In this document: one piece after another, positions 26,116-49,523 of the stretch
Layout of the letters: each line of letters opens with the position of its first letter
Position numbering within the stretch: position 1 is the first letter of the stretch
Assembly: GCA_002269645.1 (NCBI GenBank)
Contig: NIVC01000281.1
Location: 1 to 64,000, forward strand
Direction: 5' to 3'
Length of the DNA: 64,000 nt
Origin: Macrostomum lignano
Lineage: Eukaryota
The notes under the pieces: model-generated
Told to the model about the DNA's origin: nothing
Database searches by the model: none
Seen by the model: the letters and a program-made list of their open reading frames with translations, nothing else
Made by a program: the position numbers and the translations under genes

Positions 26116-27714
26116 AGACACCAATATTCAAACATGTGCCAGGATTGGTGGTTGCCAGGCATTTCCTGTACCAGGATGAGGCTGAATCGTGCAAAATTCG
26201 AAATTAGAAAGAACCCTAATATTTGTTTCAAATTTCAAATTCCAACAAAGCCGCTAAGCACCCGGTAACCCCTGGCATCGCGGGCCAATGCTTAAGCAGC
26301 GCTTACTCGGGACGGGACGGAGTGGCTTGGCTGGAAAGTTAAACTGTCGCGATTGCAAGTGCGCTGCGCGAAAAAATTACTTTGTTGTGTAGCAGTCTTT
26401 AATCTCCTGCGTTTCCAACTCCCTCTCTGGCGGGGCGCTGCGTGCAGCGGGCGGCGGCCCAGTTTCTGGGACAGCCGAACCCAGTGGCCACCGAGCCCAC
26501 ACTCCCTTCGGCTCCTCCGGTCATGGCGTGCTAAACATACCGACTGGATTGGAGTTGGAGATAGTCTTATAGATTAAGCTTTAAAACTCGATGGCCTTCA
26601 AATTCCTTGTCATAGTGATGCTTCCTAACCAGATTCTAGTATCCCAGTACTCCATGGGTGTCTACCGGTAGGCAATAAGAAACGTAAGGCGAAAAGAAAT
26701 AAAAGCCAGATTAAAGGCCCTGAGCCTCCACCGGTTTACATGCCAAATCTCAGTCAACTGCGCAATTTCCATAGCAATAATTAGAGCAAATAAATTCAAG
26801 TTTAACCGAGTGCAATCCGAGGACTTTTTCGTTGACGACGCGGTCTTAAAGAACTTGTTTGGATTTATAAACAGAATTAATAGATTGTTGACAAAGATGG
26901 TGCTTTGCCCCCCCCCCCAGTGCATTGGAGCAGGAGTCGCGCATAAGAAGCTGGTGCCAGGCAAATTACACTCGTGTCATAACAATTAGCACGAGTATCC
27001 TGTGTCGTTGACTTTGCCGTTGAAATCCAATGCCTCTGTGTAAGCTGAATCCGTCCGAAAATGTTGCTCCACTTGTTTAGTTATAAATTGCCTAAATTGA
27101 ATTCCGAAATGTAGCGAGTCTCACTGCGGGGGGGGAAGGGTCGAAAACTACCCGAAAGTAAAAGTCAAACTACGCTACTTTTAGTAAAAATGGATGCTTG
27201 TGGAGAATTTTCCTGTGCAAAACATTCTTTAAATGATTAGGTGTGTTAAACCGATCTCTCTCCCCTCCTTTGAATAAGACTCAAATCTCGGCTTCATAGA
27301 AGCAGGTTAATCAAAGTGAGTAGCTAATAGTAGGATCTCAAGAAGTCTACATTTTTATCTGCCCCAAAGTGAATATCATGGATAACAATTAAAACTCTGA
27401 TGACAACTCTCACTGCTGCATGATGTTCTTCGTACCTTTAGTACCTTCTTTAAAGTTCTTTAGAGTTCTTTAGAAGAGTTTCTTCACTAGGGAAAATCAG
27501 TCCAAAACAAAGTCGGTCTCCTTCAGCCTCATCATAGTGTCGCCCACCAGTCGAATGTCGTTCATGTCAACGACAATGGAGGCGGCGATGCGGATGAACA
27601 GCGAGTCCTCGATGTTGAGAATCATCAGGTCCATTTTGAGCTTGTAGGCCAGGAATTTCCACATGTTGCTCTCGAATCTCGTCTCCTCTGCCTGCGATTT
27701 CGGGTTGCGAAGGA

Positions 27715-28575
27715 GAGAGTAGAGTAGAGGAGAGAAGAGAAGAGGAGAGGAGAGGAAAAGAGAGGAGAGGAGAGGGAAAGAGAGGAGAGGAGAGGAGAGG
27801 AGAGGAGAGGAGAGGAGAGGAGAGGAGAGGAGAGGAGAGGAGAGGAGAGGAGAGAAGAGGAGAGGACAGGAGAGGAGAGGAGAGGAGAGGAGAGGAGAGG
27901 AGAGGAGAGGAGAGAGGAGAGGAGAGGAGAGAAGAGGAGAGGAGAGGATAGTAGAGGAGAGGAGAGGAGAGGAGAGGAGAGGAGAGGAGAGGAGAGGAGA
28001 GGAGAGGAGAGGAGAGGATAGTAGAGGAGAGGAGAGTAGAGAAGAGGAGAGGAGAGGAGAGGAGAGGAGAGGAGAGGAGAGGAGAGGAGAAGAGAGGAGA
28101 GGAGAGGAGAGGAGAGGAGAGGAGAGGATAGTAGAGGAGAGGAGAGGAGAGGAGAGGAGAGGAAAGGAGAAGAGAGGAGAGGGAAAGAGAGGAGATGAGA
28201 GGAGAGAGGAGAGGAGATGAGAGGAGAGGATAGGAGAGGGAGAATAGGAGAGGAGAGGAGAGGAGAGGAGAGGAGAGGAGAGGAGATGAGAGGAGAGAGG
28301 AGAGGAGAGGATAGGAGAGGAGAAGAGAAGAGAAGAGAGGAGAGGAGAGGAGAGGAGAGGAGAGGAGAGGAGAGGAGAGGAGAGGAGAGGAAAGGAAAGG
28401 AGAGGAGAGGAGAGGAGAGGAGAGAAGAGAAGAGAGGAGAGGAGAGGAGAGGAGAGGAGAGGAGAGGAGAGGAGAGGAGAGGAGAGGAAAGGAAAGGAGA
28501 GGAGAGGAGAGGAGAGGAGAGGAAAGGAAAGTAGAAGAGAGGACAGGAGAGGAGAGAAGAGAAGAGAGGAGGTCA
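27715..28575 (+). repeat. (AGAGG)n microsatellite in lyase copy 1 intron 5
   Basis: Mirror of 43985-44640. Confidence 0.95.
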
Positions 28576-29274
28576 CAAACTCGACCTCTCCAAAGAAGAA
28601 CTCACAAACTTCTTGATGGCGGGCCTCTGAAGATGCTGGGGTAGGCGGATGAGGCGCATGAACGGCGCCTGCATTTCAGCCGGCAGGGGCAGCAGGTCGG
28701 TGCCCCAGAATCCGGCCAGATAGCTGCTGGCCTCATCAGCAAGGCTGCGGCAGTATTCGTAAACTCTGTCCTGATGTGCATTGGTGAAGGTAACAGAGGT
28801 ATGTTTCACTCATTCAGACAGTGTTGAGCAGCCCCAATTGGCCAGCAGACACTCACCAGACCGCCGCAAATCTCGTCGACAAACTTCAAAGCTTCCGGGA
28901 TGACGTAGAAGCTGCTGGTGTCCCTGGTGCCCAGGTAGGAGTACCTGTGCGGCAGCACCTCGTCATGGAGCAGCCAGGAGACAATGTCGGGTTTCATGGT
29001 GCTCACGTGAGCCTCGCTAATCCACATCAGAGCGACTGATTTCGGCAGGAAGTGCCACTTGTTAAGGTTGCCGAGGTAGAAGTCGGCGCCGATGTCCTCG
29101 ATATCCAGATTTGGCACCTGGCCGATGGCGTGGGCCCCGTCGATGATCACCTTGATGCCCCGGCTGCGGCACAGGGCTGTGAGCTCCTTCACTGGCATCA
29201 GGCAAGCCGTGGTGCTCGTGATATGGTCTAAATAGGGGATGGCAGATGAGTAGTGTTGCTGGGAGCTGCGCAGT

Positions 29275-31770
29275 ACCTGTGTCACCCTACCTGTCCACCT
29301 GTGTCACCCCACCTGTCCACCTGTGTCACCCTGCCTGTCACCTGTGTCACCCTACCTGTCCACCTGTGTCACCCTGTGTCACCTGTGTCACCCTACCTGT
29401 CCACCTGTGTCACCCTGTGTCACCCTGTGTCACCCTATCTGTCACTTGTGTCACCCTACCTGTCCACCTGTGTCACCCTACCTGTCCACCTGTGTCACCC
29501 TACCTGTCCACCTGTGTCACCCTGCCTGTCACCTGTGTCACCCTACCTGTCACCCGTGTCACCTGTGTTACCCTAACTGTCACCTGTGTCACCCTGCCTG
29601 TCACCTGTGTCACCCTACCTGTCCACCTGTGTCACCCTGTGTCACCCTGTGTCACCCTATCTGTCACTTGTGTCACCCTACCTGTCCACCTGTGTCACCC
29701 TACCTGTCCACCTGTGTCACCCTACCTGTCCACCTGTGTCACCCTGCCTGTCACCTGTGTCACCCTACCTGTCACTTGTGTCACCCTACCTGTCACTTGT
29801 GTCACCCAACCTGTCACCTGTGTCACCCTACCTGTCACCTGTGTCACCCTACCTGTCACCTGTGTCACCCTACCTGTCACCTGTGTCACCCTACCTGTCA
29901 CCTGTGTCACCCTACCTGTCACCTGTGTCACTCTACCTGTCACCTGTCACCTGTGTTACCCTAACTGTCACCTGTGTCACCCTGCCTGTCACCTGTGTCA
30001 CCCTACCTGTCACTTGTGTCACCCTACCTGTCACCTTTGTCACCCTACCTGTCACCTGTGTCACCCTACCTGTCACCTGTGTCACCCTACCTGTCACTTG
30101 TGTCACCCAACCTGTCACCTGTCACCCTACCTGTCACCTGTGTCACCCTACCTGTCACCTGTGTCACTTTAACTGTCACCTGTCACCCTACCTGTCACCT
30201 GTGTTACCCTACCTGTCACCTGTGTCACCCTACCTGTCACCTGTCACCCTACCTGTCACCTGTGTCACCCTACCTGTCACCTGTGTCACTTTAACTGTCA
30301 CCTGTCACCCTACCTGTCACCTGTGTTACCCTACCTGTCACCTGTGTCACTCTACCTGTCACCTGTGTCACCCTACCTGTCACCTGTGTCACCCTACCTG
30401 TCACCTGGGTCACCCTACCTTGATGTGTTCCTTATTACCAGTCCTCAACTGTAATCAAGGAACAATCACTTCTAGCTCTGTAGCTAGGCAACCCAGTAAG
30501 TCAACAGAAGGTATTCAATTACAATCCGGATTGAGTTGTTCTCTTCCTTGCGTTGATCTCTCTTGTGTAGTTCTCAACTGTAGATCTCTCAATAGATCTC
30601 GTAGACTTCTAGACGTCTTCAGATGTAGATCAGGTCCGAGTTCCTTTGTTCTCTTCTGTAGAAGTAGTTCCGGCCGGAATCTGTAGTTCGGACCAATGGG
30701 AAGCTTCCAATTACAATGGGTACCCTGCGCCAAACTGCGGTCTTAATTAAGCCTCCTTCTTCTAGCAGTGCCTCTAAGCACTCTAGGAATAGCTCCGGAA
30801 ACCACTGATAGTCTTCTAAGATCTATCAGGGGCAGTCCTTCTGGAGACTGCAACCAGTGGAGTCTAACTAGACTCAAGAGTCTCAACAGACTCAAATAAA
30901 CTCAAGTCTTACTAGACTTGAGCGAGACGTCTCTAACAACAACGGGCGCAAATAAGGAAGGCTTACCGCAACAATCGACCGAGTCTTGGTCCAGGAAGTC
31001 CGACTTCGGCTTCCTCTTCGGAGCTCTTCTCCCGAGGAGAACTTGTTGGCTCCGGGTCCGTTCCGGACCACTTGTATTTATAGGCGTTCGGACCTCTCTC
31101 GAGGTCGCACATCACTGTCTTCGCAAATGTCAAAGTGTCACGATTCGGTGGCTGTCAAGCATGACAGGGTAGAAAGTTGCGCAACTAGTCTACTGTAAAA
31201 GCGCATGATTGGTTACCGTAGCTGGTAGACTTTGATTGGTTCATCCGGGTGCAAACCGGGTGCAAGCCAAATGATGAATCGCAGGTGGGGTTTAACTTGA
31301 CAATTTTAGGTCACGCGTGATTGGTCGGTTGCCAAAAATAGCATGACCGACTTTTCTCTCTTTTGATTGGTTGATTAAAATATATGTATGGTTCAGCGCA
31401 TATCTTTATACATGCAACTTAGTACTTACTACTGAATAAAAATGTATAAGTAGTATGTTAACCATTTTTACGGATTTTTGAGAAAGGCAGAATATTCTAC
31501 AACCTGTCACTTGTGTCACCCTACCTGTCACCTGGGTCACCCTACCTGTCACCTGTGTCACCCGACCTGTCACCTGTGTCCTCTACCTGTCACCTGTGTC
31601 ACCCTAACTGTCACCTGTGTTACCCTAACTGTCACCTGTGTCACCCTACCTGTCACCTGTGTCACTCTAACTGTCACCTGGGTCGCCCTACCTGTCACCT
31701 GTGTCACTCTACCTGTCACCTGTGTCACTCTACCTGTCACCTGTGTCACCCTAACTGTCACCTGGGTCAC
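29275..31770 (+). repeat. GTCACC-based minisatellite in lyase copy 1 intron 3, interrupted by a solo LTR
   Basis: Units like acctgtcacctgtgtcaccct at 29275-30420 and 31502-31770; a shorter counterpart lies at 43060-43285. Confidence 0.92.
30421..31501 (-). mobile_element. Solo LTR (1081 bp)
   Basis: TG...CA termini flanked by the 4-bp TSD ACCT (30417-30420 and 31502-31505). Absent from the equivalent intron of copy 2. The minus strand carries four CCAAT boxes (31208-31370) upstream of TATAAATA (31082-31075). Confidence 0.85.
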
Positions 31771-33335
31771 CCACCTTATCGCCTGTCCCCCAGCTACATT
31801 CCCAAAATCCCCAGTGGGGTCGCACCGAACACGGCAATTCGAACTTTCGGCCTCCTGTCCAGCTCCTGCTCGACCGCCCGCAGCACGTCCTCGCCCGACT
31901 TCAGCGGCAGTTGAAGCTTCGCTTCGGGCGCCTCCCCGGCCTCCGTGGCAGCCATCCTGACGGCGATGTAGGTCCAGGAGTTGACGAGCACCTGGGAGCC
32001 GGGCGGCTCCAGGGCCAACAGCCGGCGCAGAATGTTGGACACTCCGATGGTGACATTCTCCAGCAGGGCGCACTGCTGCGGCCGCACCCGCAGGCGGCTG
32101 GCGATGGCCTCCAGGCTGCTGTAGTTCAGATCCACCTGGCGGAGTCGAACGAACTCGTCGGCGAACGACTCGAACTCTTCGGTGAGTCTGCGGGCGGCGG
32201 TGTCTGTGGGATCCGCTAAGGGTGTCTGTGGGATCCGCTAAGGGTGTCTGTGGGATCCGCTAAAGAGTGCCTGTGGGATCCGTTTATGGTGTCTGGGGGA
32301 TCCGCTAGGGTGTCTGTGGGAGCCGCTAAGGGTGTCTGTGGGATCTGCTAAAGGTGTCTGTGGGATCCGCTAAGGGTGTCTGTGGGATCTGCTAAAGGTA
32401 TATTCTGTGGCTAAAGGTGTCTCGCCACCAAAATCTCGAAAATGTAAGAAACTTCCTTACGATTTTTTAGAATCTATGAGTCTCAACGTAGAATTTGAGC
32501 AATCATAGCATTTTATGTATTCATTACTTCAAGGGATCAAGTATCATTTGTTTACCGCAGTTTGCTATCCAGAACGCTTTTCGGTGCCACCCCGAACGAG
32601 CCATTGTTCAGCATGAGGACGCCACGGCGAGCCACGTGGGGAAAGTGCTGCTCAAGCATCGGCCTGCCGAACTCAGCGACTTAGGGCTGCCCGGATGTTT
32701 CTAAAAATAGAATTTTAAAGGGTGGATGAGGCGCCAATGAGGGGCGCTAATTAGGGGCGCTAATAAGAGGGGGCTCTAATGAGGGCCGCTATTGAGGGGT
32801 TGTAATATGAGAGGCACTAATATTTTACTACATTTCTTACTACATTCAAACTTGTTTTACTTACCAGCTTCAGTTTTATCCATCGCTGTCGGAGTTAAAA
32901 TAGAATTTGTTAATTTAAACTTGACTTTTTGAACTTTGAAGGCTAAATCGAAGCGAAAAATTGGCCTTGTGCTGCCGCCTGAAGCAGTGCCGCCTCTTTT
33001 CAAAGAAAATTCTTTAACTGCTTTGTTACTTAAAAATTGAACCGGTGTTAACTTTTGTCTGCAGAATAGATAAAACTGGCAAAAGGCGTCCCTTTTGGAC
33101 CTTATCTACGACTTCGGCACCATAACTGCATAGCAAGAGACAGCCTGAGCTATCTGTTCACCGAAATCTACTATAAACACGCGTGAAAAGCTTCGGCTTC
33201 TTGATTTCTCCAAGGTTGGCCTGCAGTTGCGGGAAAGCGCAGGTGAAACCTAAACAGCCAAGGCCATTAACTTCTGCGGTGCAAGTCAAGGACATTTTTG
33301 CTGCTAAAATGATTAAAATTGCCCACAATGTGACA

Positions 33336-33843
33336 GATCCCAGATCCCCGATCCCAGATCCCCGATCCCAGATCCCCGATCCCAGATCCCCGATCCCAGA
33401 TCCCCGATCCCAGATCCCCGATCCCAGATCCCCGATCCCAGATCCCCGATCCCAGATCCCCGATCCCAGATCCCCGATCCCAGATCCCCGATCCCAGATC
33501 CCCGATCCCAGATCCCCGATCCCAGATCCCCGATCCCAGATCCCCGATCCCAGATCCCCGATCCCAGATCCCCGATCCCAGATCCCCGATCCCAGATCCC
33601 CGATCCCAGATCCCCGATCCCAGATCCCCGATCCCAGATCCCCGATCCCAGATCCCCGATCCCAGATCCCCGATCCCAGATCCCCGATCCCAGATCCCCG
33701 ATCCCAGATCCCCGATCCCAGATCCCCGATCCCAGATCCCCGATCCCAGATCCCCGATCCCAGATCCCCGATCCCAGATCCCCGATCCCAGATCCCCGAT
33801 CCCAGATCCCCGATCCCAGATCCCCGATCCCAGATCCCCGACC
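33336..33843 (-). repeat. 14-bp G-rich satellite (GGGATCTGGGATCG)n, left junction array
   Basis: Reads gatcccagatcccc on the + strand, about 36 units; marks the inner end of the left arm. Confidence 0.97.
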
Positions 33844-34555
33844 AGGGGGCGCTGGAACAGGGTGCCAAAACCTGATACAATATAAGAGGGTGCCTAGTAG
33901 TGTTCATTTGAATTTGTGTTAAGACTGCTGTTCATTAAACAAAGGCTCGTTAATGCCCCATCGAATGAGCCATAAAACCAGGCGACTCGATGAACTGAAC
34001 AAATGACAAACCGCGCAGTGGCAAAACGTTGCCCTAATTTAAAAACGGTCTGAACGAGCCATTAAACAAGACAAACGCAAGCAGATGTCATTATAGTAGG
34101 TTACTTTTGCTGCTTATATTTTCAAAGAAATGTCGACACAAACTGCAGATGAGAGTGTGCGCTACGAGCCTTGACTACATGTACGCTCTCTCAGTAAGCT
34201 CTCCTCTCTTTCGGAAGGAAGCGGTGCTCCATGAGCTTGTACTCTTGTCTGTCCCTTCTCTCTCCCTTCCTCTCCTAAGGCAAGTATATTCTTGCCAACC
34301 CAGCGTACAGCCAGAGTGCTTTCAGCTAAAAAAAAATGAGCACTGAGAATACAAACAGTCATTCCGCCCATTTACCGGTTTGCTACATGAGCTTTGCGCC
34401 TAGACTGGAATTATTTTAGTGATTATAGCTCGCGCATATGTACTACGCTTTTTGGCTAGACGAGCCCCCCCCTCTGAGAGCTATAAATAATATTGATTAG
34501 CAATCTGTGCTGGACAAGAATTGAATTGACTCATTGAAAAGTTGACTCATTGAAA

Positions 34556-37500
34556 ATGTCTCAAGCTGCGGTTGAGTTACAAAACAGCAAAGCTGCCGGT
34601 GCCGATCAACTTCAACTGGTCGAGGTAGAGCGAATCGTCGCATCCGAGCTGCTGCTCCGCGAGTTGAACCTCTGGCGCCTGACTCGGCGACTTTGTCGGG
34701 TGTTTGTTCAAGTGGGCGACGGACCAATGCATCGGACTCGAGAGAAAGACCAGGCCGAGGCCAGGAACATCTTTGATCGCTGGCTCCTGTCCTTTCAACT
34801 GGAGAGTCGCAGCGAAGAAGCTTGTGGAGCTCGTTCGCTGTCACTACCAATTTTCCCAGGTCTATTGGGCACTGAAACGTTCGCTAGCCAAAAGTTGGTC
34901 TGTATTAGTCATGCGTATTTTTACTGCCATTTTTGTTTTGCTGTATGTTTCCTAGCAATTAGCAAAACATCTGAGCAACCCCCTTAAGCCACGGCATTTC
35001 AGCCAGTCCCCAATGACCATTGACTCCTAAAGTTGCATATTGTGCTCCATACAAACAAGACCCATGAACACAAGGTACAAAGGACGCTACGTGCACACTG
35101 GATTTTCCTAGAAATGAGCTGGGGCTGGTAAAGAATGTTGTTGTCGTATCGCTGGTTCATTTAGTAATTTAGCCGGCCTTTAGCAAATCGACGACGAAAA
35201 CGAGCGTTCTACTCCTTTTTGCATTCAATTTTGAACTAGGAGCTATCAAAACTGACAAATCGCTATTCAATTTCAACGTTGAGGGGTTCAAAAGTCGGTT
35301 TTTAGTGCTCATATTTCTTAGCCACGATGCATGTACCGTCACGGAAAAATTTCTGATCGAATGGTGCAAGTTCGAAGAAAATCGGTCAAGCCTTTTGGGA
35401 GATAATTGATTGCGCACATACAAGATTTTCATTTTTAGTATATGGAAAAAAAGATGGATGTCCAGGCAACGAGTGCACGTGTATTTAGCAGCATTAAAAT
35501 CACGATACCATATTGCTCATGCATTAAATTACTTTAGCCAATACGCGATCACAAGCCGTTTAAACACGCTTTTACACATTTAAATCGTGTTATGTCAATT
35601 GTAACACGATATAAATATGTAAAAGCGTACAATATCAATGTCAATTGTAATACGAGGTACGATATAAATGTGTAAAAGCGTGCATTAAACGCTAAAAGCA
35701 TTTAGAAATATTGAAATATCTATGGTCAAAAGTGGGTTTTGAAAGTCTTTAAAGCCAGAAGCTGAAGCTACGAGCGTAAATATGGTTTAGCTGCGTTTTA
35801 TACTCCACTCATCTGCCGCTCCATTGAAACGAACCATGATCTACGAGGCTTCTACTGGTGTGTTAATAGGTCTTCTGCAAATGCACTGAGCAGCCAATAG
35901 CCGTCGTCGGGCGCAGTTTGGAGACGCAGCAGACGCTTGCTTCTGCGATTTCTGGTACTTTCTACAACTGCCAATTTCACGTGCACATTAATAATAAGCC
36001 ATGAGGCATAAGAAATAGGTAACTGAGGCATACTGCCTTAACTGCTGTTGCTTCTAATGTTGCTTTTATTGCTTGCGTTATACGTTATGCAGTGCTAAAT
36101 ATAGCTTTGAATATCTGGCCTCTTAGCGTTTGTTTCGTCCATAGACATTTGAATTGTGCAACAATCAGGCTTGATTGGTATACCTCTAAAAACCCCTCCA
36201 AAATGATACAATACTACTTAATACTTGGTATTGAATCCTATATTCCAATCGCTGTCTGTGGAACAAGCCTGGTAGCATACGTATACGCTCGTATGTTTGT
36301 ATGCTTAGAGGTCAGCTCAAAGGGCAATCTTAATTGCCTACTCTCCGAGTTGGCTGTCTCCATTGAGCAAGAAAACTTTTTCCCGACAGATCGATGAGTG
36401 CGTGGAAAAGAAGTTCAGCGCGTCCCGAAGCAACGCGCAGCGAATCGCTCGGGTCCTGGTAGACGCGGTGTCTCAGTTTGAGCAGACAATCGACCAGCTG
36501 ATCCAATCATCAGATCGGCAGCCAGGCAATGCAGGCGGCGTCAGTGTGGTCTTCTTGGAACGGCGACGCCAACAGAATGGTGACCTCGGAGATGACAGCG
36601 AGTGCAAGGAATCGGAGGTTGAAGGACAGCTGCTTATTGGCTGTGAGTTAAAGCACACTGTGTACTTAATATTTTTTCTGAGACTGTTTTAGTTCGGCAG
36701 TTGATTTGATTTATTGATTGATTTTCAAACCTCAACCTCTCTGCAGGTCACCAAAACTCTTTAAGTCTGTCTGATGGCTACGCCAGTCCATGCTGTCCTA
36801 GAATCAGCTTTCTGGTAAGAAATTTCGGCTTAAAAGCTACGGCCCGGATGCTGTTACGGTACGAGACTCTGGGCACAGGCAGCCTGCAGTGGGGCGACCC
36901 GGTCACGGTGCACCACGCACTGTACGAACACATGGGCGTGCGCTATGAAGGATTCGCATCGCCTTTGAACTCGAAACTGCTTGGAAAACCGGACGTCGCA
37001 TTTTGCAGCCTGTTCCCGGACACGGACGCTCCGTTTGGCAGCCTTGGCGACTTCTTCGCCGTGGACTTCAGCCGCTATCCAGGAGGCTGGACTGTCAATC
37101 CACCTTTTATCGAGGAGCTAATGTTGCAAGTCGCCAACAAGGTGTTGGACTATTTGAACAGGTATTTGAACGTGTTTGAGTATATTCTATAGATATACGA
37201 CTCATAAATGTACTCATATGTGTACATCCGGAATGGATGTTGAATAAATCCGGTATGAATGTTGCATACATCCGATCTGACATTCTTAGTTCATCCGGTA
37301 TGAAGGTTGCATACATCCGATCTGACATTCTTAGTTCATCCGGTATGAATGTTGCATACATCCGATCTGACATTCTTAGTTCATCCGGTATGAATGTTGC
37401 ATACATCCGATCTGACATTCTTAGTTCATCCGGTATGAATGTTGCATACATCCGATCTGACATTCTTAGTTCATCCGGTATGAATGTTGCATACATCCGA

Positions 37501-39085
37501 TCTGACATTCTTAGTTCATCCGGTATGAATGTTGCATACATCCGATCTGACATTCTTAGTTCATCCGGTATGAATGTTGCATACATCCGATCTGACATTC
37601 TTAGTTCATCCGGTATGAATGTTGCATACATCCGATCTGACATTCTTAGTTCATCCGGTATGAATGTTGCATACATCCGATCTGACATTCTTAGTTCATC
37701 CGGTATGAATGTTGCATACATCCGATCTGACATTCTTAGTTCATCCGGTATGAATGTTGCATACATCCGATCTGACATTCTTAGTTCATCCGGTATGAAT
37801 GTTGCATACATCCGATCTGACATTCTTAGTTCATCCGGTATGAATGTTGCATACATCCGATCTGACATTCTTAGTTCATCCGGTATGAATGTTGCATACA
37901 TCCGATCTGACATTCTTAGTTCATCCGGTATGAATGTTGCATACATCCGATCTGACATTCTTAGTTCATCCGGTATGAATGTTGCATACATCCGGTATGA
38001 CGTTCTTAGTGCATCCGGTATAACATGCTGAGAACAACCGGGATTACATGCTTAGTACATCCGGGCTGACATCTTAGTACATCCGGTACGACATGCCGAG
38101 TACATCCGGGATGAAATGCTTAGTACATCTGGTACGATATGCACACCATATGCACACCAGTTAGTTACATGAACTTTGTGCTCCTGCCTAGAAGCCCGCA
38201 CGTACACTCTACAGTCAAGCACTATTATCGGTGCTCAGTGTGTTCCAACATCTCATTCCTTCACCCCTCGATTGTTCCCAGAGATGCCAGCGGCGCCTGC
38301 TGGTTCTTCGTCACCTTCCCGTGCTGGGGTGACTCCCCGGGCTGGCAGCGGCTGGCGGAATCCAAGCACAAACTGCAGCAGCTCTACCTGTCGCCGAAGA
38401 CGTTCACAGTGCAGGTGAAAATCTCATGATAGGCTGCGAAATGCCCGATATTGAAATTGAATCACTGATCAGTAATATTTTGACGATCTGATATGAGCGT
38501 ATGTACTTCGATCTTCGATATAAGTACATAAGTACATTTAAGTTCGATATCAGCTACGAAAGCTGACTCTTCCACTCTCTTCCACTCTCTTCCACTCTCT
38601 TCCACTCTCTTCCACTCTCTTCCACTCTCTTCCACTCTCTTCCACTCTCTTCCACTCTCTTCCACTCTCTTCCACTCTCTTCCACTCTCTTCCACTCTCT
38701 TCCACTCTCTTCCACTCTCTTCCACTCTCTCTCCACTCTCTTCCACTCTCTTCCACTCTCTTCCACTCTCTTCCAATTTCTTTTTCCGATTTTCCGATTT
38801 TGCTTTCTGTATCCTTCTCCAATCTTAATAACTGATGTCGTTTGGCAGTCGCTCACCCGCTGCATTTGCTGCCTAAACAAACAAACTTTTGCTCAAACTC
38901 CAAAGGACTGCTACGGTAGCGTACTCCGCCCGCGTATGGCGCTCAGCATCTTCGCCATGGGCCGGCGGCTGCCCAGCATTGCTGATTGGAACGGCATCAT
39001 CAAGCAGTGCTTCACCTGTACCGATGTGGACAGCGTCCGCGCTGCGTGGATGGAGCACTGCCTGACACTGCCTGACACTGCCTGA
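34556..39085 (+). CDS. PCIF1/CAPAM-like cap adenosine N6-methyltransferase-domain protein lacking a WW domain
   Basis: Exons 34556-34859, one or more unresolved exons, about 36390-36642, 36747-37161, 38282-38414 and 38906-39085. Motifs LLRYETL..LQWG, EGFASPLN, FCSLFPDTDAPFGSLGDFF, VNPPFIEELM and FFVTFPCW match the PCIF1 methyltransferase core (ECFASPLN..YCSAFPDTDGYFGSRG..ANPPFCEELM..FIVFIPEW). Confidence 0.85.
37240..38140 (+). repeat. 45-bp intronic minisatellite
   Basis: Unit atccggtatgaatgttgcatacatccgatctgacattcttagttc, about 17 near-perfect copies. Confidence 0.97.
38565..38775 (+). repeat. 10-bp repeat (ttccactctc)n in intron
   Basis: Directly visible. Confidence 0.95.
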
Positions 39086-39512
39086 CACTGCCTGACACTG
39101 CCTGACACTGCCTGACACTGCCTGACACTGCCTGACACTGCCTGACACTGCCTGACACTGCCTGACACTGCCTGACACTGCCTGACACTGCCTGACACTG
39201 CCTGACACTGCCTGACACTGCCTGACACTGCCTGACACTGCCTGACACTGCCTGACACTGCCTGACACTGCCTGACACTGCCTGACACTGCCTGACACTG
39301 CCTGACACTGCCTGACACTGCCTGACACTGCCTGACACTGCCTGACACTGCCTGACACTGCCTGACACTGCCTGACACTGCCTGACACTGCCTGACACTG
39401 CCTGACACTGCCTGACACTGCCTGACACTGCCTGACACTGCCTGACACTGCCTGACACTGCCTGACACTGCCTGACACTGCCTGAAACTTCCTGACACTG
39501 CCTGACACTGCC
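39056..39512 (+). repeat. 10-bp repeat (cactgcctga)n starting inside the last coding exon
   Basis: Supplies the TGA at 39083-39085. Confidence 0.95.
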
Positions 39513-39835
39513 GTTCACGGCCTGTCGTTTCTGTCCTGTCCGGGACTTCATCCAATGAGCGCCACTTGCGAACCGCGGTTTTGATCAGAATTCAATTGCA
39601 ACCTTACTATTGTGGACAAGAACGTTTCTGCCGACTTTTTCTCATTCAAATTATGCATGAAAAACTATGCTTAATACATTAAGATCTTTTCTGATCAATC
39701 AATTTTTCTTAGAGTACATCGTAAATCCTGGCTTTTGTTTAACACAATAAGTGCCTTTCTGTTTATTTTTAATAAAGTTTGCTTGTCTATTTTCAAAAAT
39801 ATTCGAGTATATTATTATGCTATTTAGGATCGAGG

Positions 39836-41257
39836 ATTTGGGATCTGGGATCTGGGATCGGGGATCTGGGATCGGGGATCTGGGATCGGGGATCTGGGAT
39901 CGGGGATCTGGGATCGGGGATCTGGGATCGGGGATCTGGGATCGGGGATCTGGGATCGGGGATCTGGGATCGGGGATCTGGGATCGGGGATCTGGGATCG
40001 GGGATCTGGGATCGGGGATCTGGGATCGGGGATCTGGGATCGGGGATCTGGGATCGGGGATCTGGGATCGGGGATCTGGGATCGGGGATCGGGGATCTGG
40101 GATCGGGGATCTGGGATCGGGGATCTGGGATCGGGGATCTGGGATCGGGGATCTGGGATCGGGGATCTGGGATCGGGGATCTGGGATCGGGGATCGGGGA
40201 TCTGGGATCGGGGATCTGGGATCGGGGATCTGGGATCGGGGATCTGGGATCGGGGATCTGGGATCGGGGATCTGGGATCGGGGATCTGGGATCGGGGATC
40301 TGGGATCGGGGATCTGGGATCGGGGATCTGGGATCGGGGATCTGGGATCGGGGATCTGGGATCGGGGATCTGGGATCGGGGATCTGGGATCGGGGATCTG
40401 GGATCGGGGATCTGGGATCGGGGATCTGGGATCGGGGATCTGGGATCGGGGATCTGGGATCGGGGATCTGGGATCGGGGATCTGGGATCGGGGATCTGGG
40501 ATCGGGGATCTGGGATCGGGGATCTGGGATCGGGGATCTGGGATCGGGGATCTGGGATCGGGGATCTGGGATCGGGGATCTGGGATCGGGGATCTGGGAT
40601 CGGGGATCTGGGATCGGGGATCTGGGATCGGGGATCTGGGATCGGGGATCTGGGATCGGGGATCTGGGATCGGGGATCTGGGATCGGGGATCTGGGATCG
40701 GGGATCTGGGATCGGGGATCTGGGATCGGGGATCTGGGATCGGGGATCTGGGATCGGGGATCTGGGATCGGGGATCTGGGATCGGGGATCTGGGATCGGG
40801 GATCTGGGATCGGGGATCTGGGATCGGGGATCTGGGATCGGGGATCTGGGATCGGGGATCTGGGATCGGGGATCTGGGATCGGGGATCTGGGATCGGGGA
40901 TCTGGGATCGGGGATCTGGGATCGGGGATCTGGGATCGGGGATCTGGGATCGGGGATCTGGGATCGGGGATCTGGGATCGGGGATCTGGGATCGGGGATC
41001 TGGGATCGGGGATCTGGGATCGGGGATCTGGGATCGGGGATCTGGGATCGGGGATCTGGGATCGGGGATCTGGGATCGGGGATCTGGGATCGGGGATCTG
41101 GGATCGGGGATCTGGGATCGGGGATCTGGGATCGGGGATCTGGGATCGGGGATCTGGGATCGGGGATCTGGGATCGGGGATCTGGGATCGGGGATCTGGG
41201 ATCGGGGATCTGGGATCGGGATCTGGGATCGGGATCTGGGATCGGGGATCTGGGATC
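39836..41257 (+). repeat. 14-bp G-rich satellite (GGGATCTGGGATCG)n, right junction array
   Basis: About 100 units; inverted partner of 33336-33843. Confidence 0.97.
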
Positions 41258-41709
41258 TGTCACATTGTGGGCAATTTTAATCATTTTAGCAGCAAAAATG
41301 TCCTTGACTTGCACCGCAGAAGTTAATGGCCTTGGCTGTTTAGGTTTCACCTGCGCTTTCCCGCAACTGCAGGCCAACCTTGGAGAAATCAAGAAGCCGA
41401 AGCTTTTCACGCGTGTTTATAGTAGATTTCGGTGAACAGATAGCTCAGGCTGTCTCTTGCTATGCAGTTATGGTGCCGAAGTCGTAGATAAGGTCCAAAA
41501 GGGACGCCTTTTGCCAGTTTTATCTATTCTGCAGACAAAAGTTAACACCGGTTCAATTTTTAAGTAACAAAGCAGTTAAAGAATTTTCTTTGAAAAGAGG
41601 CGGCACTGCTTCAGGCGGCAGCACAAGGCCAATTTTTCGCTTCGATTTAGCCTTCAAAGTTCAAAAAGTCAAGTTTAAATTAACAAATTCTATTTTAACT
41701 CCGACAGCG

Positions 41710-44700
41710 ATGGATAAAACTGAAGCTGGTAAGTAAAACAAGTTTGAATGTAGTAAGAAATGTAGTAAAATATTAGTGCCTCTCATATTACAACCCCTCA
41801 ATAGCGGCCCTCATTAGAGCCCCCTCTTATTAGCGCCCCTAATTAGCGCCCCTCATTGGCGCCTCATCCACCCTTTAAAATTCTATTTTTAGAAACATCC
41901 GGCCAGCTCCAAGCCGCTGAGTTCGGCAGGCCGATGCTTGAGCAGCACTTTCCTCACGTGGCTCGCCGTGGCGTCCTCATGCTGAACAATGGCTCGTTCG
42001 GGGTGGCACCGAAGAGCGTTCTGGATTGCAAACTGCGGTACAAATGATTCCTGATCCCTTGAAGTAATGAATACATGAAATGCTGAGATTTCTCAAATTC
42101 TCAGAGTTCTCAGAGATTCTAAAAAGTCCTAAGGACGTTTCTAATACTTTCTAATACTTAAAATTATTTGTGGCGGCCGTCTGACATCCCTTAGCGGATC
42201 CCTCAGACACCCTTAGCGGATCCCTCAGACACCCTTAGCGGATCCCACAGACACCCTTAGCGGATCCCTCAGACACCCTTAGCGGATTCCACAGACACCC
42301 TTAGCGGATCCCACAGACACCTTAGCGGATCCTGCGCAGACACTCTTAGCGGATCGCACAGACACCCTTAGCGGATCCCACAGACACCCTTAGCGGATCC
42401 CACAGACACCTTAGCGGATCCTGCGCAGACACCCTTTGCGGATCCCACAGACACCCTTAGCGGATCCCACAGAAAGCCTTAGCGGATCCCTTAGACACCC
42501 TTAGCGGATCCATCAGACAGCCTTAGCGGATCCCTCAGTCAGCCTTAGCGGATCCTTCAGACACTGCCTTCAGCCTTCCGCTTCAAATATTTTATAAGAC
42601 AGTTCTTCCTCCTACTTGAGCCTACTTGAGCATTCTCTTTGATCTGCCGCCCGCAGACTCACTGAAGAGTTCGAGTCGTTCGCCGACGAGTTCGTTCGAC
42701 TCCGCCAGGTGGATCTGAACTACAGCAGCCTGGAGGCCATCGCCAGCCGCCTGCGGGTGCGGCCGCAGCAGTGCACCCTGCTGGAGAATGTCACCATCGG
42801 AGTGTCCAACATTCTGCGCCGACTGTTGGCCCTGGAGCCGCCCGGCTCCCAGGTGCTCGTCAACTCCTGGACCTACATCGCCGTCAGGATGGCTGCCACG
42901 GAGGCCGGGGAGGCGCCCGAAGCAAAGCTTCAACTGCCGCTGAAGTCGGGCGAGGACGTGCTGCGGGCGGTCGAGCAGGAGCTGGACAGGAGGCCGAAAG
43001 TTCGAATTGCCGTGTTCGGTGCGACCCCACTGGGGATTTTGGGAATGTAGCTGGGGGACAGGTGATGAGGTGGGTGACCCAGGTGACAGTTAGAGTGACA
43101 CAGGTGACAGGTAGAGTGACACAGGTGACAGGTAGGGTGACACAGGTGACAGTTAGGGTGACACAGGTGACAGAGTGACACAGGTGACAGGTAGGATGAC
43201 ACAGGTGACAGTTAGGGTGACACAGGTGACAGTTAGAGTGACACAGGTGACAGGCAGGGTGACACAGGTGACAGGCAGGGTGACAGATGCTGCGCAGCTA
43301 GGGCTCCCAGCAACGCTTATCCGACATCCCCTATTTAGACCATATCACGAGCACCACGGCTTGCCTGATGCCAGTGAAGGAGCTCACAGCCCTGTGTCGC
43401 AGCCGGGGCATCAAGGTGATCATCGATGGGGCCCATGCCATCGGCCAGGTGCCAAACCTGGACATCGAGGACATCGGCGCCGACTTCTACCTCGGCAACC
43501 TCAACAAGTGGCACTTCCTGCCGAAATCAGTCGCTCTGATGTGGATTAGCGAGGCTCACGTGAGCACCATGAAACCCGACATTGTCTCCTGGCTGCTCCA
43601 TGACGAGGTACTGCCGCACAGGTACTCCTACCTGGGCACCAGGGACACCAGCAGCTTCTACGTCATCCCGGAAGCTTTGAAGTTTGTCGACGAGATTTGC
43701 GGCGGTCTGGTGAGTGTCTGCTGGCCAATTGGGGCTGCTCAACAACTGTGAAGCATACCTCTGTTACCTTCACCAATGCACATCAGGACAGAGTTTACGA
43801 ATACTGCCGCAGCCTTGCTGATGAGGCCAGCAGCTATCTGGCCGGATTCTGGGGCACCGACCTGCTGCCCCTGCCGGCTGAAATGCAGGCGCCGTTCATG
43901 CGCCTCATCCGCCTACCCCAGCATCTTCAGAGGCCCGCCATCAAGAAGTTTGTGAGTTCTTCTTTGGAGAGGTCGAGTTTGTGACCTCCTCTCTTCTCTT
44001 CTCTCCTCTCCTGTCCTCTCTTCTACTTTCCTTTCCTCTCCTCTCCTCTCCTCTCCTCTCCTTTCCTTTCCTCTCCTCTCCTCTCCTCTCCTCTCCTCTC
44101 CTCTCCTCTCCTCTCCTCTCCTCTCCTCTCCTCTCTTCTCTTCTCTTCTCCTCTCCTATCCTCTCCTCTCCTCTCTCCTCTCCTCTCCTCTCCTCTCCTC
44201 TCCTCTCCTCTCCTCTCCTATTCTCCCTCTCCTATCCTCTCCTCTCATCTCCTCTCCTCTCTCCTCTCATCTCCTCTCTTTCCCTCTCCTCTCTTCTCCT
44301 TTCCTCTCCTCTCCTCTCCTCTCCTCTCCTCTACTATCCTCTCCTCTCCTCTCCTCTCCTCTCCTCTCCTCTTCTCTCCTCTCCTCTCCTCTCCTCTCCT
44401 CTCCTCTCCTCTTCTCTCCTCTCCTCTCCTCTCCTCTCCTCTCCTCTCCTCTCCTCTCCTCTCCTCTCCTCTCCTCTCCTCTCCTCTCCTCTCCTCTCTT
44501 CTCCTCTCCTCTCCTCTCCTCTCCTCTACTATCCTCTCCTCTCCTCTCCTCTCCTCTCCTCTCCTCTCTTCTCTTCTCTTCTCCTCTCCTCTCCTCTCCT
44601 CTCCTCTCCTCTTCTCCTCTCTCCTCTACTCTACTCTCTCCTTCGCAACCTGAAATCGCAGGCAGAGGAGACGAGATTCGAGAGCAACATGTGGAAATTC

Positions 44701-44856
44701 GTGGCCTACAAGCTCAAAATGGACCTGCTGATTCTCAACATCGAGGACTCGCTGTTCATCCGCATCGCCGCCTCCATTGTCGTTGACATGAACGACATTC
44801 GACTGGTGGGCGACACAATGATGAGGCTGAAGGAGACCGACTTTGTTTTGGACTGA
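41710..44856 (+). CDS. PLP-dependent class-V aminotransferase-fold lyase (Egt2/CefD/L-cysteine desulfhydrase-like), copy 2, intact, 418 aa
   Basis: Exons 41710-41728, 41893-42037, 42657-43018, 43339-43709, 43787-43951 and 44662-44856 total 1257 nt. Motifs LNNGSFGVAP, ENVTIGVSNIL, AVFDHITS, IIDGAHAIGQ, DFYLGNLNKW (PLP lysine) and LGTRDTS. Confidence 0.92.
42185..42560 (+). repeat. ~21-bp minisatellite in lyase intron 2 (counterpart 32215-32400)
   Basis: Unit cttagcggatcccacagacac(c). Confidence 0.88.
43985..44640 (+). repeat. (CCTCT)n microsatellite in lyase copy 2 intron 5
   Basis: Mirror of 27715-28575 with shared variant motifs. Confidence 0.95.
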
Positions 44857-45759
44857 TTTTCCCTAGTGAAGAAACTCTTCCAGAGAACTCTTTTTTAATA
44901 AACTTCTAGAGAACTATAATACTTACTTGTGGCTTGTACGCTCGTAGCAGAATATCATACAGCAGTGAGAGGTTTTGCATAGAATGTAACTGTATTTTAC
45001 ATATATATGTGATAACTTTGGGACAAATAAAGGTGAATTACATGTACTTCTTGAGATGCTGTTACTTAAGTTGATTGACCTGCTTGTGGCGTTCTGACGG
45101 AGCGAGTTCGCGTAGACGAGCTGGGCTGCTATTGTTGGCTAGCGGAGCTCAGAGTCATATATTAGAATGATAAAACAGTGTTGCCGAATTTCTTTTTGAT
45201 GGAGGAGAAATAGAAACTTATTGTAACGAAATATCCGATGATTAGTATATTTAACGATTGCACCAGTATATTAGGAATTGGACGACACCAACTTAGCCAC
45301 ACATCACACCTACGCCTCACCAAGGTATAACTTAATAGATAACAGCATTTAAATTTGTGCCAAGAAGACTCCGATAAAACAAAATCTATGCATTTTAACT
45401 TTGATTTATAAACAGAAGAAAACAGTTAATAAATAAATTACATACATTTGGAATACTTGATAATTGAAATTACGAAACCGTTACACTCGCCTCCCTAATA
45501 ATAACAGCAAAGGAATTTATTTAAACTATTGAAAATCGAACGATGGAATAAAATACAGCTGAGCCGATTACAAAAACAAGGGAACGACACTCATCATGAA
45601 AACTACACTCAAATGCTTACATATTGGGGCTTAAAACATGTAGGATGAAACAAAAAATTCCTGTAGGCTGATAAGCAAAATATATAAAGCGAGTCAGAGC
45701 CAATGACAGGTCAGAGCAATAAGCAGTTAGAGTTAAATTTCGCCAGCGCAGCAGCGACC

Positions 45760-46351: not shown

Positions 46352-49300
46352 TTACAAGTAGGTGATTGATTTGGCTCTAGCAGCGAGGGATTGGAATCGG
46401 TACTCGATCGAGGCCGGCTGCTTGAACTCGGCTTGCTCGTTTTCTTGCACTAGCTCTTGCCGACTTGTCAAACTGATCGCTGCGACCGAACCTGACACAC
46501 TAGCCACTGCTTCAAACCCGACACCCTGATTAGGATTCTCCTCTGGTTCTGAGCGCCGTTCGTCAACAGCGGGAATCGAACTTCCCTGCTCCCACGACTC
46601 TCCACAGTCCAGATCCAGAGAGCCCCTATCTGGTAAGCCTGCTGCGGTGAAAGATCTGTCACTCGAGGATTGCTGACCTTGGATGGAAGCCCGAGGCTCT
46701 TCCGTCTCAGGTGCCAGTCCAAATCTGTCGATAAGGTCAATGTACGCTGGTCTTCTCACACACCTCTTCAGCCTGTCAATGTTGTAGACATTGTGCTTTG
46801 GGTTTGGTATTCCGGCGTCTGACACTGGGGCAAGCCGGTAATTTCTGTCCGATACCTTTTCGATGATCTTGTACGGCCCAAACCACACCGCAGTGTCCAA
46901 GCCCTTGTGGTCCGGATTTAGGACCCACACGAGCTCTCCCTCCTTAAAGACCGAATGGTGAGTGCCCCGATCGTAGTAGCGCTTCTGGCGCTGTTGGGCT
47001 TTGCCTCGAATCTGTCTGGCCAAGGTCGATACGGTCACCAGCTCGTGGTATAGTTTATGGGCGAACCTGTTGGGCTGATATTGGTCCAGCGCTGGAGGCC
47101 CGTATTTAAGGTCAAGGGGAAATACGAGCTCACGCCCCAAGAACAGGCGCGCTGGCGTGAAGCCAGTAGACTCAGCCTCCGTCGCTCTGATTGACAGGCC
47201 AACGAGGCGGGCTGCTAGCGACCAATTACACTCTCGGCCCTGACACACGGCACGAATTTGACTCTTAATTGTTTGAATAGCTCTTTCAGCCTTGCCATTG
47301 GCTTGGGGCCGGCGAGCTGCGATCCGAACCTTTTCGATTTCAAGGAGGCTGGTGAGCTCTTCCAACACGTGGTTGATGAACGCCGTGCCATTGTCGGACA
47401 CAATCGCTTCCATGGCCCCCCACCTGACAACCCACTCGGTAAGAATCGTTTGTGCAGTGGTTTCAGCAGTTATATCTGGCACAGGAATAATTTCGACCCA
47501 GCTGGTAAAGCGGTCAATGAGAACCAGCAAAAACCTGTTGCCGCTTTGTTCCAGGAATGGACCTGCGTGGTCCACGTGAACCACCTGACCCGGGTAGCCG
47601 GCAAGGGTGGGCTGCATCGGTTCCTTATTTTTACGATTAGTTCGCTTTGTTCGGGCACAGGTCTCACATTCGGCGATGATCCCCGTGACATGAGTCTTTA
47701 GTTCATTGATCTGGAAACGGTTTTTTAGCGCTTTCGTGGTTTTTGTCACCCCACAGTGATTCAATGCTTGATGGTAATTCAGAACGATTTCATCGACGTC
47801 CGCTGTCTCGGGAATGACTAAGACAGAGCGGAAAGGTTTGCCTTTCTTGGCGGGCTTCTGGATGTACAACAGACCCTCGTTAAGACTTAGTTTCTCAAAA
47901 CTTGAGCACAATACTCTGATCTCACGACTGCATGACTGGAGCTCTTCGCTACTCGGTTTCTGCCCACCCTTCACGGCTTCTATCAGCCTTAAGATGTCAA
48001 TTGAGGATTCTTGAGCTTGCCTTGCCCAGTTTTCTTCCTGCTGATCCGACAACCCATCCTCCGAATCAGAATCGCTTGCAACGACTGGTTTAGCAGGGTG
48101 CTCCACAACCCGGATTGCTGGCGCTTCAGCAAGCATTCCCATCTCTGCCTGCTGATGTCCAGCATTCTCAGAAAGCAGCTCTGGTTGATGGAAAGTTTGA
48201 GTCTCAACCTCCTTATTTTCAGATTTAAAATTTTGATTCTCATCGTTCTCTGTCTGGAGAGCGACAGAACACGTTTGAGTCATTTTTGTTGTAAGAGTCT
48301 GTACGACCGCAGTCGTGTTTTTGATCTTACCAGCAAATTTGTCCTTGAACTCTGGTATCTGGCTACATGTCGGACAGTCGTGGTGATCGGCTCGAAACTT
48401 TGGGTTTCGGCTAAGAAAATCAGCGTTTAAGTGCTCTTGACCAGCCCTGTGCCTAACTTCAAAGTCATATTCCCCGAGGCGTTCAGGAGGTGTCTGGTTA
48501 ATTTTAAAGTCATAGGCTTCAATTGTGGCCAACCATTGGGCCAGCATGCCCGTGGCATGTCTCTTTGTGTGCAACCATTTCAGCGCTGCCGCGTCGGTGC
48601 GTACGACGAAGGGGCGGTCCAGCAGATAGACTCGAAAGTTCTCGAGCATCATCACCACGCCCAGAAGTTCCCTCATCGTGGCACAATAGTTTCTCTGCGC
48701 AGCGGTAAATCTTTTTGAAGCGTAACTGATCACTTTTTCTTGATCACCAGCCCCTTGTTGGGACAAGACAGCACCAATTCCCTCGAGCGAGCTGTCGCAA
48801 TCCAAGATAAATGACCCTGCATTCGGTGAAAAGTCGGGATAAGCTAAGACTGGTGGCGAACAGAGGCATGACTTCAGCTCAGAGAACGCTTTGTCATGCT
48901 TTTCATGCCAGACAAACTTCTCAGCCCCTCTTGCCAGAGCGTAAAGTGGCGCGGCTATCACCGAGAACCTAGGGACGAATTTCCTGTAGTAGTTACAGAA
49001 GCCCAGAAACGACAGCAGCTGCTTCTGATCGATCGGTCTAGGCCAATCGCGAACGGCATCAGTTTTCTCTGGGTCAGCTTCTATTCCCTGTCCCGAAACT
49101 ATGAAACCAAGAAACCGCACCTTATCCCTGAATAGCTCACATTTGCTGGGTTTGATTTTTAAGTTTGCCTTGCGCAGCCTCCAAAGTACAAGCGCCAAAT
49201 TCACTATCATCTCGTCATTGTCCCTAGCTTTTACGATGACATCGTCGAGGTAAATCAGACTGACCTTGAGCAACAATAGCTGGAAGACTCGGTGCATCAG

Positions 49301-49523
49301 CCGAGCGAATGTTGCTGGGGCGGTTTTGATGCCAAAAGGCACAACTTTCCATCTAAAAGTACCTTGTGGGCACGAGAAGGCAGTGAAATCCCTGTCTTGC
49401 TCACGAATTCCTACTTGCCAGTAGGCGGAGGTCAGGTCAAGGCTCGAAAATACCTGAGCCCCAGCCAAGCTGTCGAAAGACTCATCAACCAGAGGCAGGG
49501 GAAAGCTGCAAGGCTTAATGGCT
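46352..49523 (-). CDS. pol: Gypsy Pol remainder (RT, RNase H, integrase), joined to the upstream ORF across a +1 frameshift
   Basis: YLDD, RNase H DCDSSLEGIGAVL, integrase HHCC zinc finger, DHAG..SDNG..NGKAER and GPY. Confidence 0.95.

Follow-up and report, generated by a model that had tools for sequence, protein, structure and literature searches.

PCIF1 (CAPAM) is, to our knowledge, the sole known writer of cap-adjacent N6,2'-O-dimethyladenosine (m6Am), and we know of studies so far on the WW-containing vertebrate enzyme alone. Canonical PCIF1 possesses an N-terminal WW domain that binds the C-terminal domain (CTD) of RNA polymerase II (Pol II) in its Ser5-phosphorylated form. Flies carry an inactive PCIF1 copy and C. 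elegans has none. The gene described here, BOX15_Mlig021227g1 (hereafter Mlig021227), comes from the free-living flatworm Macrostomum lignano, which is genetically tractable by RNA interference and transgenesis. It lies in the initial 64 kb (the window, meaning the whole stretch of DNA that was analyzed) of the 84-kb contig NIVC01000281.1, assembly GCA_002269645.1 (Mlig_3_7), and encodes a protein of 440 amino acids (aa) that was identified at 100% identity (P0001) by a homology search with the conceptual translation. The span 34556-39085 on the plus strand runs from the ATG through the stop codon exactly as in the GenBank gene, and the coordinates proposed by an initial annotation, made from the sequence alone, agree with it at both ends.

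Iyer and coworkers described an ancient PCIF1 clade whose members mostly carry a fused WW domain and which takes in inactive domains of DIRS1 elements (PMC4738411). A PCIF1-like copy in a giant virus has received passing mention only (PMC7909422), and the open literature yielded no relevant paper linking PCIF1 with flatworms, planarians, Schistosoma or Platyhelminthes. The existence of Mlig021227 is not new since the gene is already annotated as a PCIF1_WW-domain protein; the novelty is in its placement and context, namely a WW-less subfamily to which giant-virus proteins also belong, an expansion into multiple paralogs and introns that the paralogs do not share. Judged from its sequence, Mlig021227 is a PCIF1/CAPAM-family enzyme without a WW domain and most likely an active cap-adjacent adenosine N6-methyltransferase that lacks the WW tether. 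Taken as a whole, the evidence is probably best explained by a transcribed, two-domain, WW-less enzyme of the CAPAM type that would methylate the cap-adjacent adenosine. The initial annotation described the gene accurately, and its interpretation is partly supported. The gene thereby represents a second, large and uncharacterized WW-less branch of the family that is present, expanded and apparently expressed in the germline of a tractable animal, and it raises the question of whether the writing of cap m6Am requires a tether to the Pol II CTD.

Domain content, predicted structure and cap contacts

The sole significant Pfam match in the Mlig021227 protein is PF12237, which covers aa 229-376 with 108.2 bits (E = 4.6e-31, cut-off 31.1); this search was among the checks suggested at the outset. 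A WW domain (PF00397) was not detected in the protein even at E <= 10, and the identical scan picks up the WW domain of horse PCIF1 at 34.6 bits. A six-frame pattern scan (W-x(18-25)-W-x2-P) found no WW-like frame on the plus strand across the 34 kb upstream, and a stop codon lies in frame 7 codons before the ATG. The initial annotation had called the gene WW-less and had named an upstream WW exon as the finding that would undo this description; none was seen in the upstream part of the window. CAPAM catalysis in vitro does not need the WW domain (PMC8287941), and the absence of the domain is therefore no argument against activity of Mlig021227.

The residues that are invariant in the family are all kept in Mlig021227 (Y237, E266, S270, P271, N273, S286, D292, G299 and N316), the invariance of the first eight having been judged over 76 family members. 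The codons of the catalytic NPPF motif (N316-P-P-F319) were located at exactly the positions first reported for them, 37097-37108, and the flanking PCIF1 motifs are intact, as had been claimed. The strings that had been quoted from the protein (ARNIFDRWLL, LQWG, EGFASPLN, SKLLGKPDVA and GGWTVNPPFIE) were all found in the translation.

These residues bear on the highly improbable explanation that Mlig021227 is a non-functional relic, whether as a pseudogene, as an RNA-binding protein without catalytic activity (the case of Drosophila Pcif1) or as a DIRS1-derived methyltransferase domain. The locus is surrounded by repeats, the paralog Mlig015920 has GPPF in place of NPPF, and DIRS1 elements bear inactive PCIF1-like domains, which Iyer and coworkers placed in the PCIF1 clade (PMC4738411), a membership that they have in common with Mlig021227. 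However, the open reading frame (ORF) of Mlig021227 is intact over five exons with NPPF and all invariant residues in place, the gene model is transcript-based, and the retrotransposon ORFs of the window lie at least 7 kb away on the opposite strand. The DIRS1 domains are parts of polyproteins that also contain reverse transcriptase (RT), RNase H and a tyrosine recombinase, and their catalytic residues are degenerate, whereas Mlig021227 is a stand-alone spliced gene. Neither it nor any of 48 long relatives contains an RT, RNase H or recombinase domain, and a DIRS1 origin was rejected.

An AlphaFold2 model of Mlig021227, built on 76 homologues, has a mean predicted local distance difference test (pLDDT) of 82 and a predicted template modeling score of 0.82. 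When the model was compared with the PDB using Foldseek, all six significant matches were CAPAM structures (6IRV to 6IS0, E 4e-15 to 5e-13, template modeling score (TM-score) up to 0.55), with alignments that span the helical and methyltransferase domains; the next PDB match reached only 1e-3. A sequence search against the PDB likewise gave human and zebrafish CAPAM as the only real matches (E ~1e-15), over the core alone. Since the structural matches are to CAPAM only and extend over both domains, the model indicates that the CAPAM architecture of a helical and a Rossmann domain is retained in reduced form. The human and zebrafish enzymes, which are cap-specific m6Am writers, have in common with Mlig021227 the PF12237 core, the NPPF loop and the packing of the helical domain on the Rossmann domain. 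They differ in possessing a WW domain and a long linker (704 aa), both of which are missing from the flatworm protein. In addition, Mlig021227 has a smaller helical domain, a short and non-conserved substrate-binding loop and a 5-residue insertion after ASPLN, its core identity to PCIF1/CAPAM is only ~33%, and it falls outside the canonical clade.

The residues of CAPAM that contact 7-methylguanosine are R235, E558 and W588 (PMC13290413). They align with R75, E321 and W352 of Mlig021227, so that the cap-contact residues are common to both proteins. Arginine occupies the R75/R235 position in 72 of the 76 family members, and the tryptophan is also nearly universal in the family. P591 and P592 of CAPAM are absent from Mlig021227 and likewise from every non-vertebrate member. 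From the sequence and the predicted structure, we infer cap binding and catalysis of the following kind. Mlig021227 would bind S-adenosylmethionine, and R75, E321 and W352 would hold the RNA 5' cap in place between the helical and the catalytic domain. The methyl group would be transferred to N6 of the first transcribed adenosine to yield m6A(m), and the enzyme would find its substrates without being linked by a WW domain to the phosphorylated CTD of Pol II.

Several points weigh against a cap-adjacent methyltransferase. The TM-score of 0.55 to CAPAM is moderate because the helical domain of Mlig021227 is smaller. The substrate-binding loop of CAPAM comprises P612-N638 (PMC8287941), and this loop (with Y618, Y633 and H637) is shorter and not conserved in Mlig021227, so that specificity for the 2'-O-methyl group or the cap may differ. 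An insert of ~30 residues (roughly 163-195) is unique to this paralog and is modeled with low confidence, the pLDDT falling below 50 at residues 170-178 and 185-191. The domain fusions described below are metagenomic gene calls in distant relatives, and the germline transcript described below may stem from a sister copy and not certainly from Mlig021227. Finally, the whole WW-less subfamily is known from sequence.

An unlikely alternative is that Mlig021227 is an active N6-adenine methyltransferase with another substrate, such as internal RNA adenines, small RNA, trimethylguanosine-capped RNA or DNA. The unlikeness of its substrate-binding loop to that of CAPAM and the lack of a CTD tether are in keeping with such a role, the multi-paralog expansion suggests diversified targets, and the family is derived from bacterial DNA methyltransferases (PMC4738411). 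On the other hand, the R/E/W triad and the cap-pocket helical domain are conserved, and relatives are fused to or adjoin cap-modifying enzymes. Spliced-leader caps, which the initial annotation had put forward as a special substrate, are a weakened candidate because the published M. lignano leader of 35 nt has C, not A, as its first nucleotide (PMC8629364), although this holds for the leader as published and the 5' nucleotide of the spliced-leader RNA itself may differ.

Placement in the PCIF1 family and relatives in giant viruses

A neighbor-joining tree of 209 catalytic cores (200 bootstraps) places the M. lignano paralogs with P0006, P0007, P0008 and P0200 in a flatworm-type clade (84.5% bootstrap). 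The canonical clade of vertebrate and chytrid PCIF1 and a few others (89.5% bootstrap) excludes them. In this tree, where no invertebrate canonical PCIF1 was included by name, Mlig021227 does not group with canonical metazoan PCIF1; such a grouping had been singled out beforehand as the outcome that would speak against a separate enzyme. Deeper nodes are poorly supported, and the sister group of the flatworm clade has a bootstrap of at most 11%.

A second distinction is the spacing from SPLN to FPDTD. All 24 scorable canonical sequences have 9 residues here, compared with 14 in all 11 flatworm-type sequences, including Mlig021227, and in most other WW-less members (subfamily range 13-18, mode 14). 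This difference between the groups makes the SKLLGKPDVA insertion a signature of the subfamily. The departure from metazoan PCIF1 that had been noted in the core is thus reflected in the tree and in the indel; the insertion itself is present as reported, but it is not particular to Mlig021227. PF12237 scores are 89-110 bits for the flatworm type versus 178-250 bits for canonical proteins, distant chytrids included. When 1.84 billion cluster representatives were scanned with HMMER without filters, 2289 clusters were retrieved at E <= 1e-3, and the best 150 all scored above 98 bits compared with 58 bits for human PCIF1. Mlig021227 is more similar to the WW-less viral and protist group than to canonical PCIF1, and by these comparisons it belongs to a short WW-less PCIF1 branch rather than to canonical metazoan PCIF1.

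Vertical descent would make Mlig021227 a fast-evolving flatworm orthologue of canonical PCIF1 that has lost its WW domain, with the viral and protist affinity as a long-branch artifact. Fast evolution is frequent in flatworm proteins, and the helical and methyltransferase architecture and an F-x-RW motif are common to Mlig021227 and human PCIF1. Chytrid PCIF1 also lacks a Pfam WW match, so that WW absence alone marks no separate family. A search with a canonical profile (human, zebrafish and chytrid) gave 961 matches, and no M. lignano WW-PCIF1 was among the best 120 that were listed, all of them vertebrate or chytrid. The proposal in the initial annotation that Mlig021227 may be a second enzyme beside a canonical one is accordingly tentative. 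Vertical origin nevertheless appears quite doubtful given the exclusion of Mlig021227 from the well-supported canonical clade, the 5-residue indel that it has in common with the WW-less group and that occurs in 0 of the 24 scorable canonical sequences, PF12237 scores below even those of distant chytrids, and pairwise scores to viral-type proteins that are ~2x those to human or chytrid PCIF1.

WW-less relatives in protists and giant viruses had been mentioned in the initial annotation, and both an IMG/VR scan and a structural search of viral proteins bear this out. The former yielded 46 loci, many on giant-virus metagenome-assembled genomes (GVMAG contigs up to 957 kb), and the latter matched proteins of Bodo saltans virus, Cafeteria roenbergensis virus (CroV), Pithovirus LCPAC, Tetraselmis virus 1, Hokovirus and salmon gill poxvirus. 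The contigs of two metagenomic relatives look virus-like, dense and free of introns. The WW-less proteins of this group (CroV E3T4I2, Bodo saltans virus A0A2H4UTM5, those of Tetraselmis virus 1, Pithovirus LCPAC, Hokovirus and the GVMAG contigs, and Micromonas C1E0K4) resemble Mlig021227 in their short architecture, 14-residue spacing and lack of a WW domain. They give the best scores beyond the flatworm clade (140-220 bits), and their structural matches are whole-length. Mlig021227 differs in residing in an animal nuclear genome, in its spliceosomal introns and in belonging to a multi-paralog family, whereas introns are absent from the viral copies, some of which have FtsJ, VP39-like or Rpb2 domains as fusion partners.

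Fusions to FtsJ were found in 6 of the 48 long members (e.g., P0235). In others the fusion partner is a VP39-like 2'-O-methyltransferase domain, a complete Rpb2 (P0224), poly(A) polymerase, XRN or a helicase, and a WW or RT domain was found in none of the 48. By sequence, the fusion partners point to mRNA 5'-end biology for the WW-less subfamily. On one of the two virus-like contigs (L002, 747-4260), a gene for a TGS1-like cap guanine-N2 methyltransferase precedes the PCIF1-like gene, which lies ~1.5 kb downstream, and two small genes separate the pair. This neighbor and the FtsJ, VP39-like, poly(A) polymerase and Rpb2 fusions are context pointing to a cap function of the subfamily. It may be conjectured that, should the Rpb2 fusion be a real gene and not an artifact of metagenomic gene calling, it could link the enzyme to the polymerase in place of a WW-CTD tether. 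What function the giant-virus homologues have, some with a fused cap 2'-O-methyltransferase or RNA polymerase domain, is a further question that this branch raises.

Gene model, paralogs and introns

Mlig021227 is a real, transcribed gene of five exons. When P0001 was mapped back onto the DNA, all four introns were found to be GT...AG, and the GC content was 56.8% in exons versus 35-43% in introns. The features of the gene are as follows.

34556-34897, plus strand: exon 1, aa 1-114; N-terminal part of the helical domain with the FDRW motif; R75 codon at 34778-34780
34898-36389, plus strand: intron 1, 1492 nt, GT...AG, phase 0; no intron there in the closest paralog, Mlig000263
36390-36642, plus strand: exon 2, aa 115-199; remaining helical domain and start of the ~30-aa paralog-specific insert
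36643-36746, plus strand: intron 2, 104 nt, GTGAGT...CAG
36747-37161, plus strand: exon 3, aa 200-337; methyltransferase core with RMLLRYE, LQWGDP, EGFASPLN, FCSLFPDTD, the 5-residue subfamily insertion and the NPPF loop
37097-37108, plus strand: codons of N316-P-P-F319, the catalytic motif; E321 codon at 37112-37114
37162-38281, plus strand: intron 3, 1120 nt; made up mainly of a 45-bp tandem array at 37248-38021 (17 copies, 99% matches)
38282-38414, plus strand: exon 4, aa 338-381; strand FFVTFP; W352 codon at 38325-38327
38415-38905, plus strand: intron 4, 491 nt; 10-bp array CTCTTCCACT at 38567-38775 (21 copies)
38906-39085, plus strand: exon 5, aa 382-440 and stop; TGA at 39083-39085

The exon structure between 34860 and 36390, which had been left for transcripts to settle, is answered by the annotated junction of 34897 to 36390 in phase 0, and the same peptide, QKLIDECVEKKFS, is uninterrupted in the closest paralog. 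A donor at 34859 with a candidate exon at 35870-35954 was rejected since its phases are incompatible, whereas the model with the donor at 34897 is in frame and paralog-supported. The boundaries of intron 2 are those of the transcript-based annotation, the flanking peptide having no counterpart in the paralogs. Just upstream of the ATG and running into it, a 16-nt direct duplication, TTGACTCATTGAAAAG, occupies 34526-34556, and its inner AG is a candidate trans-splice acceptor.

The BOX15 models in GenBank derive from a genome-guided RNA-seq assembly (PMC5730564), and the Mlig021227 model is therefore itself evidence of transcription and splicing. A matching transcript, Cluster-849.0 / RNA1509_7323, is among the germline-candidate genes in the supplement of Grudniewska et al. 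2016; it is 2216 nt long with a 5' untranslated region, coding sequence and 3' untranslated region. The 2016 transcriptome annotation gives it a PF12237 score of 105.5, a match to human PCIF1 at e = 8e-11 and a best UniRef50 match in Micromonas. Among the single-unit paralogs (89-110 bits), this score is nearest to that of Mlig021227 or a near-identical copy (108-110 bits). Lack of transcription, which had been listed as a possible objection, is thus countered. Contamination by food diatoms or a virus was rejected because the gene has spliceosomal introns and its contig, 84 kb long, contains repeats and retrotransposons of the worm type. In addition, the gene model P0359 from an older assembly includes the gene, and its paralogs are found on five other large contigs beside ordinary genes.

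Cluster look-ups revealed at least 5 paralog groups of WW-less PCIF1-like genes in M. lignano, all in one clade, and these groups most likely arose within the Macrostomum lineage.

Mlig021227: 440 aa; introns after residues 114, 199, 337 and 381
Mlig008908: 392 aa; introns after residues 103 and 269
Mlig000263 g2, g4 and g6: 1204-1283 aa; three complete units per reading frame, with one intron per unit at TFPR/WDD
Mlig015920: 372 aa; GPPF in place of NPPF; intronless
Mlig030305/031925: 361 aa; intronless

The other four groups are 34-55% identical to Mlig021227 and have the same domain layout without a WW domain, but only Mlig021227 has four introns and the ~30-aa insert. In Mlig000263g6 (P0199; locus L054, 4001-10499 of NIVC01002568.1), three helical and methyltransferase units, each with NPPF, make up 1283 aa with an intron at the same place in each unit; either the tandem-domain protein is genuine, or the annotation has merged separate tandem genes. 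Mlig015920g3 (P0201; locus L055, 4001-5119) is intronless, its catalytic asparagine is replaced (GPPF) and its LQWGDP motif is degenerate; to judge from these changes, it is probably catalytically inactive.

No intron position is common to the paralog groups, and Mlig000263, the nearest of them, is without all four Mlig021227 introns. The simplest reading of these sequences is that the ancestor was poor in introns and that introns were gained later and independently, and the suggestion in the initial annotation that the gene was intronized later gains support from the two intronless paralogs and the lack of shared positions. Paralogs without a common intron position constitute a small natural experiment on intron gain. 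Independent gain is compatible with horizontal acquisition or retroposition and proves neither.

Horizontal acquisition of the gene is plausible, if tentative, and is compatible with the mechanism proposed above. An intronless gene from a giant virus or protist would have entered the Macrostomum lineage and duplicated, after which some copies gained introns independently. The proteins from outside the clade that come nearest to it are of metagenomic, giant-virus or protist origin and not animal PCIF1, the insertion signature is common to the viral/protist group, and two paralogs are intronless while the other three have unrelated intron positions. A clade-specific profile search of 5.8 billion proteins retrieved the M. 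lignano paralogs and three of P0006, P0007, P0008 and P0200 at 461 bits or more, with the next match at 219 bits, and no named animal besides M. lignano was among its matches. However, the sister group is poorly supported, and no viral genes lie beside any copy, the neighbors being ordinary (Aminotran_5, Mito_carr, Ras and ferrochelatase). P0006, P0007, P0008 and P0200 could come from other animals, an ancient paralog retained in few lineages fits equally, and retroposition can also yield intronless copies.

A broader scenario is offered with considerable reserve. An animal may have acquired a WW-less gene from a giant virus or protist, from which at least five paralog groups grew, a three-unit tandem fusion and a GPPF variant among them. 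Some copies would have acquired introns de novo, and the genes would be put to use in the germline. Their products would be CTD-independent N6-methyltransferases of cap or 5'-end adenosines, perhaps replacing a lost canonical PCIF1 or modifying a distinct class of RNA.

Repeats and neighboring genes

Mlig021227 is the only gene in a unique spacer of 5985 bp between two inverted, duplicated arms (27462-33841 and 39827-44891) that are 88-100% identical. Each arm holds a copy of a class-V aminotransferase gene (PF00266) transcribed outward from the center, and only the right copy is annotated. The older gene model P0359 fuses exons 4-5 of Mlig021227 to the right-hand aminotransferase. The large inverted repeat was considered as the terminal repeat of a transposon, which was rejected as the arms are inverted aminotransferase gene copies. 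A 14-bp satellite, GGATCGGGGATCTG, is found at the inner edges of the arms, directly bordering the unique spacer (33336-33841, 36 copies; 39827-41257, 103 copies). A search of the window for RNA families from Rfam gave no match.

A 10-bp tandem array, CACTGCCTGA, begins within the last exon and extends over 39056-39512 (46 copies, 99% matches). The final codons of Mlig021227 (...CLTLPDTA) and the TGA are read from its first units, and it therefore seems that this microsatellite-like array has overwritten or extended the natural C-terminus. Near-perfect tandem arrays make up most of introns 3 and 4 (a 45-mer and a 10-mer, respectively), and the closest paralog is intronless at both positions. 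This raises the question of whether repeat insertion or expansion accompanied intron gain.

Further along the window, two long sets of ORFs on the minus strand (46352-52034 and 54761-57955) look by eye like those of Ty3/Gypsy-type LTR retrotransposons, with putative gag-protease and RT-RNase H-integrase proteins of 839-1087 aa. Short-period tandem arrays are dense at 1-30000 and 62500-63100, where long spurious ORFs in several frames dominate the ORF lists.

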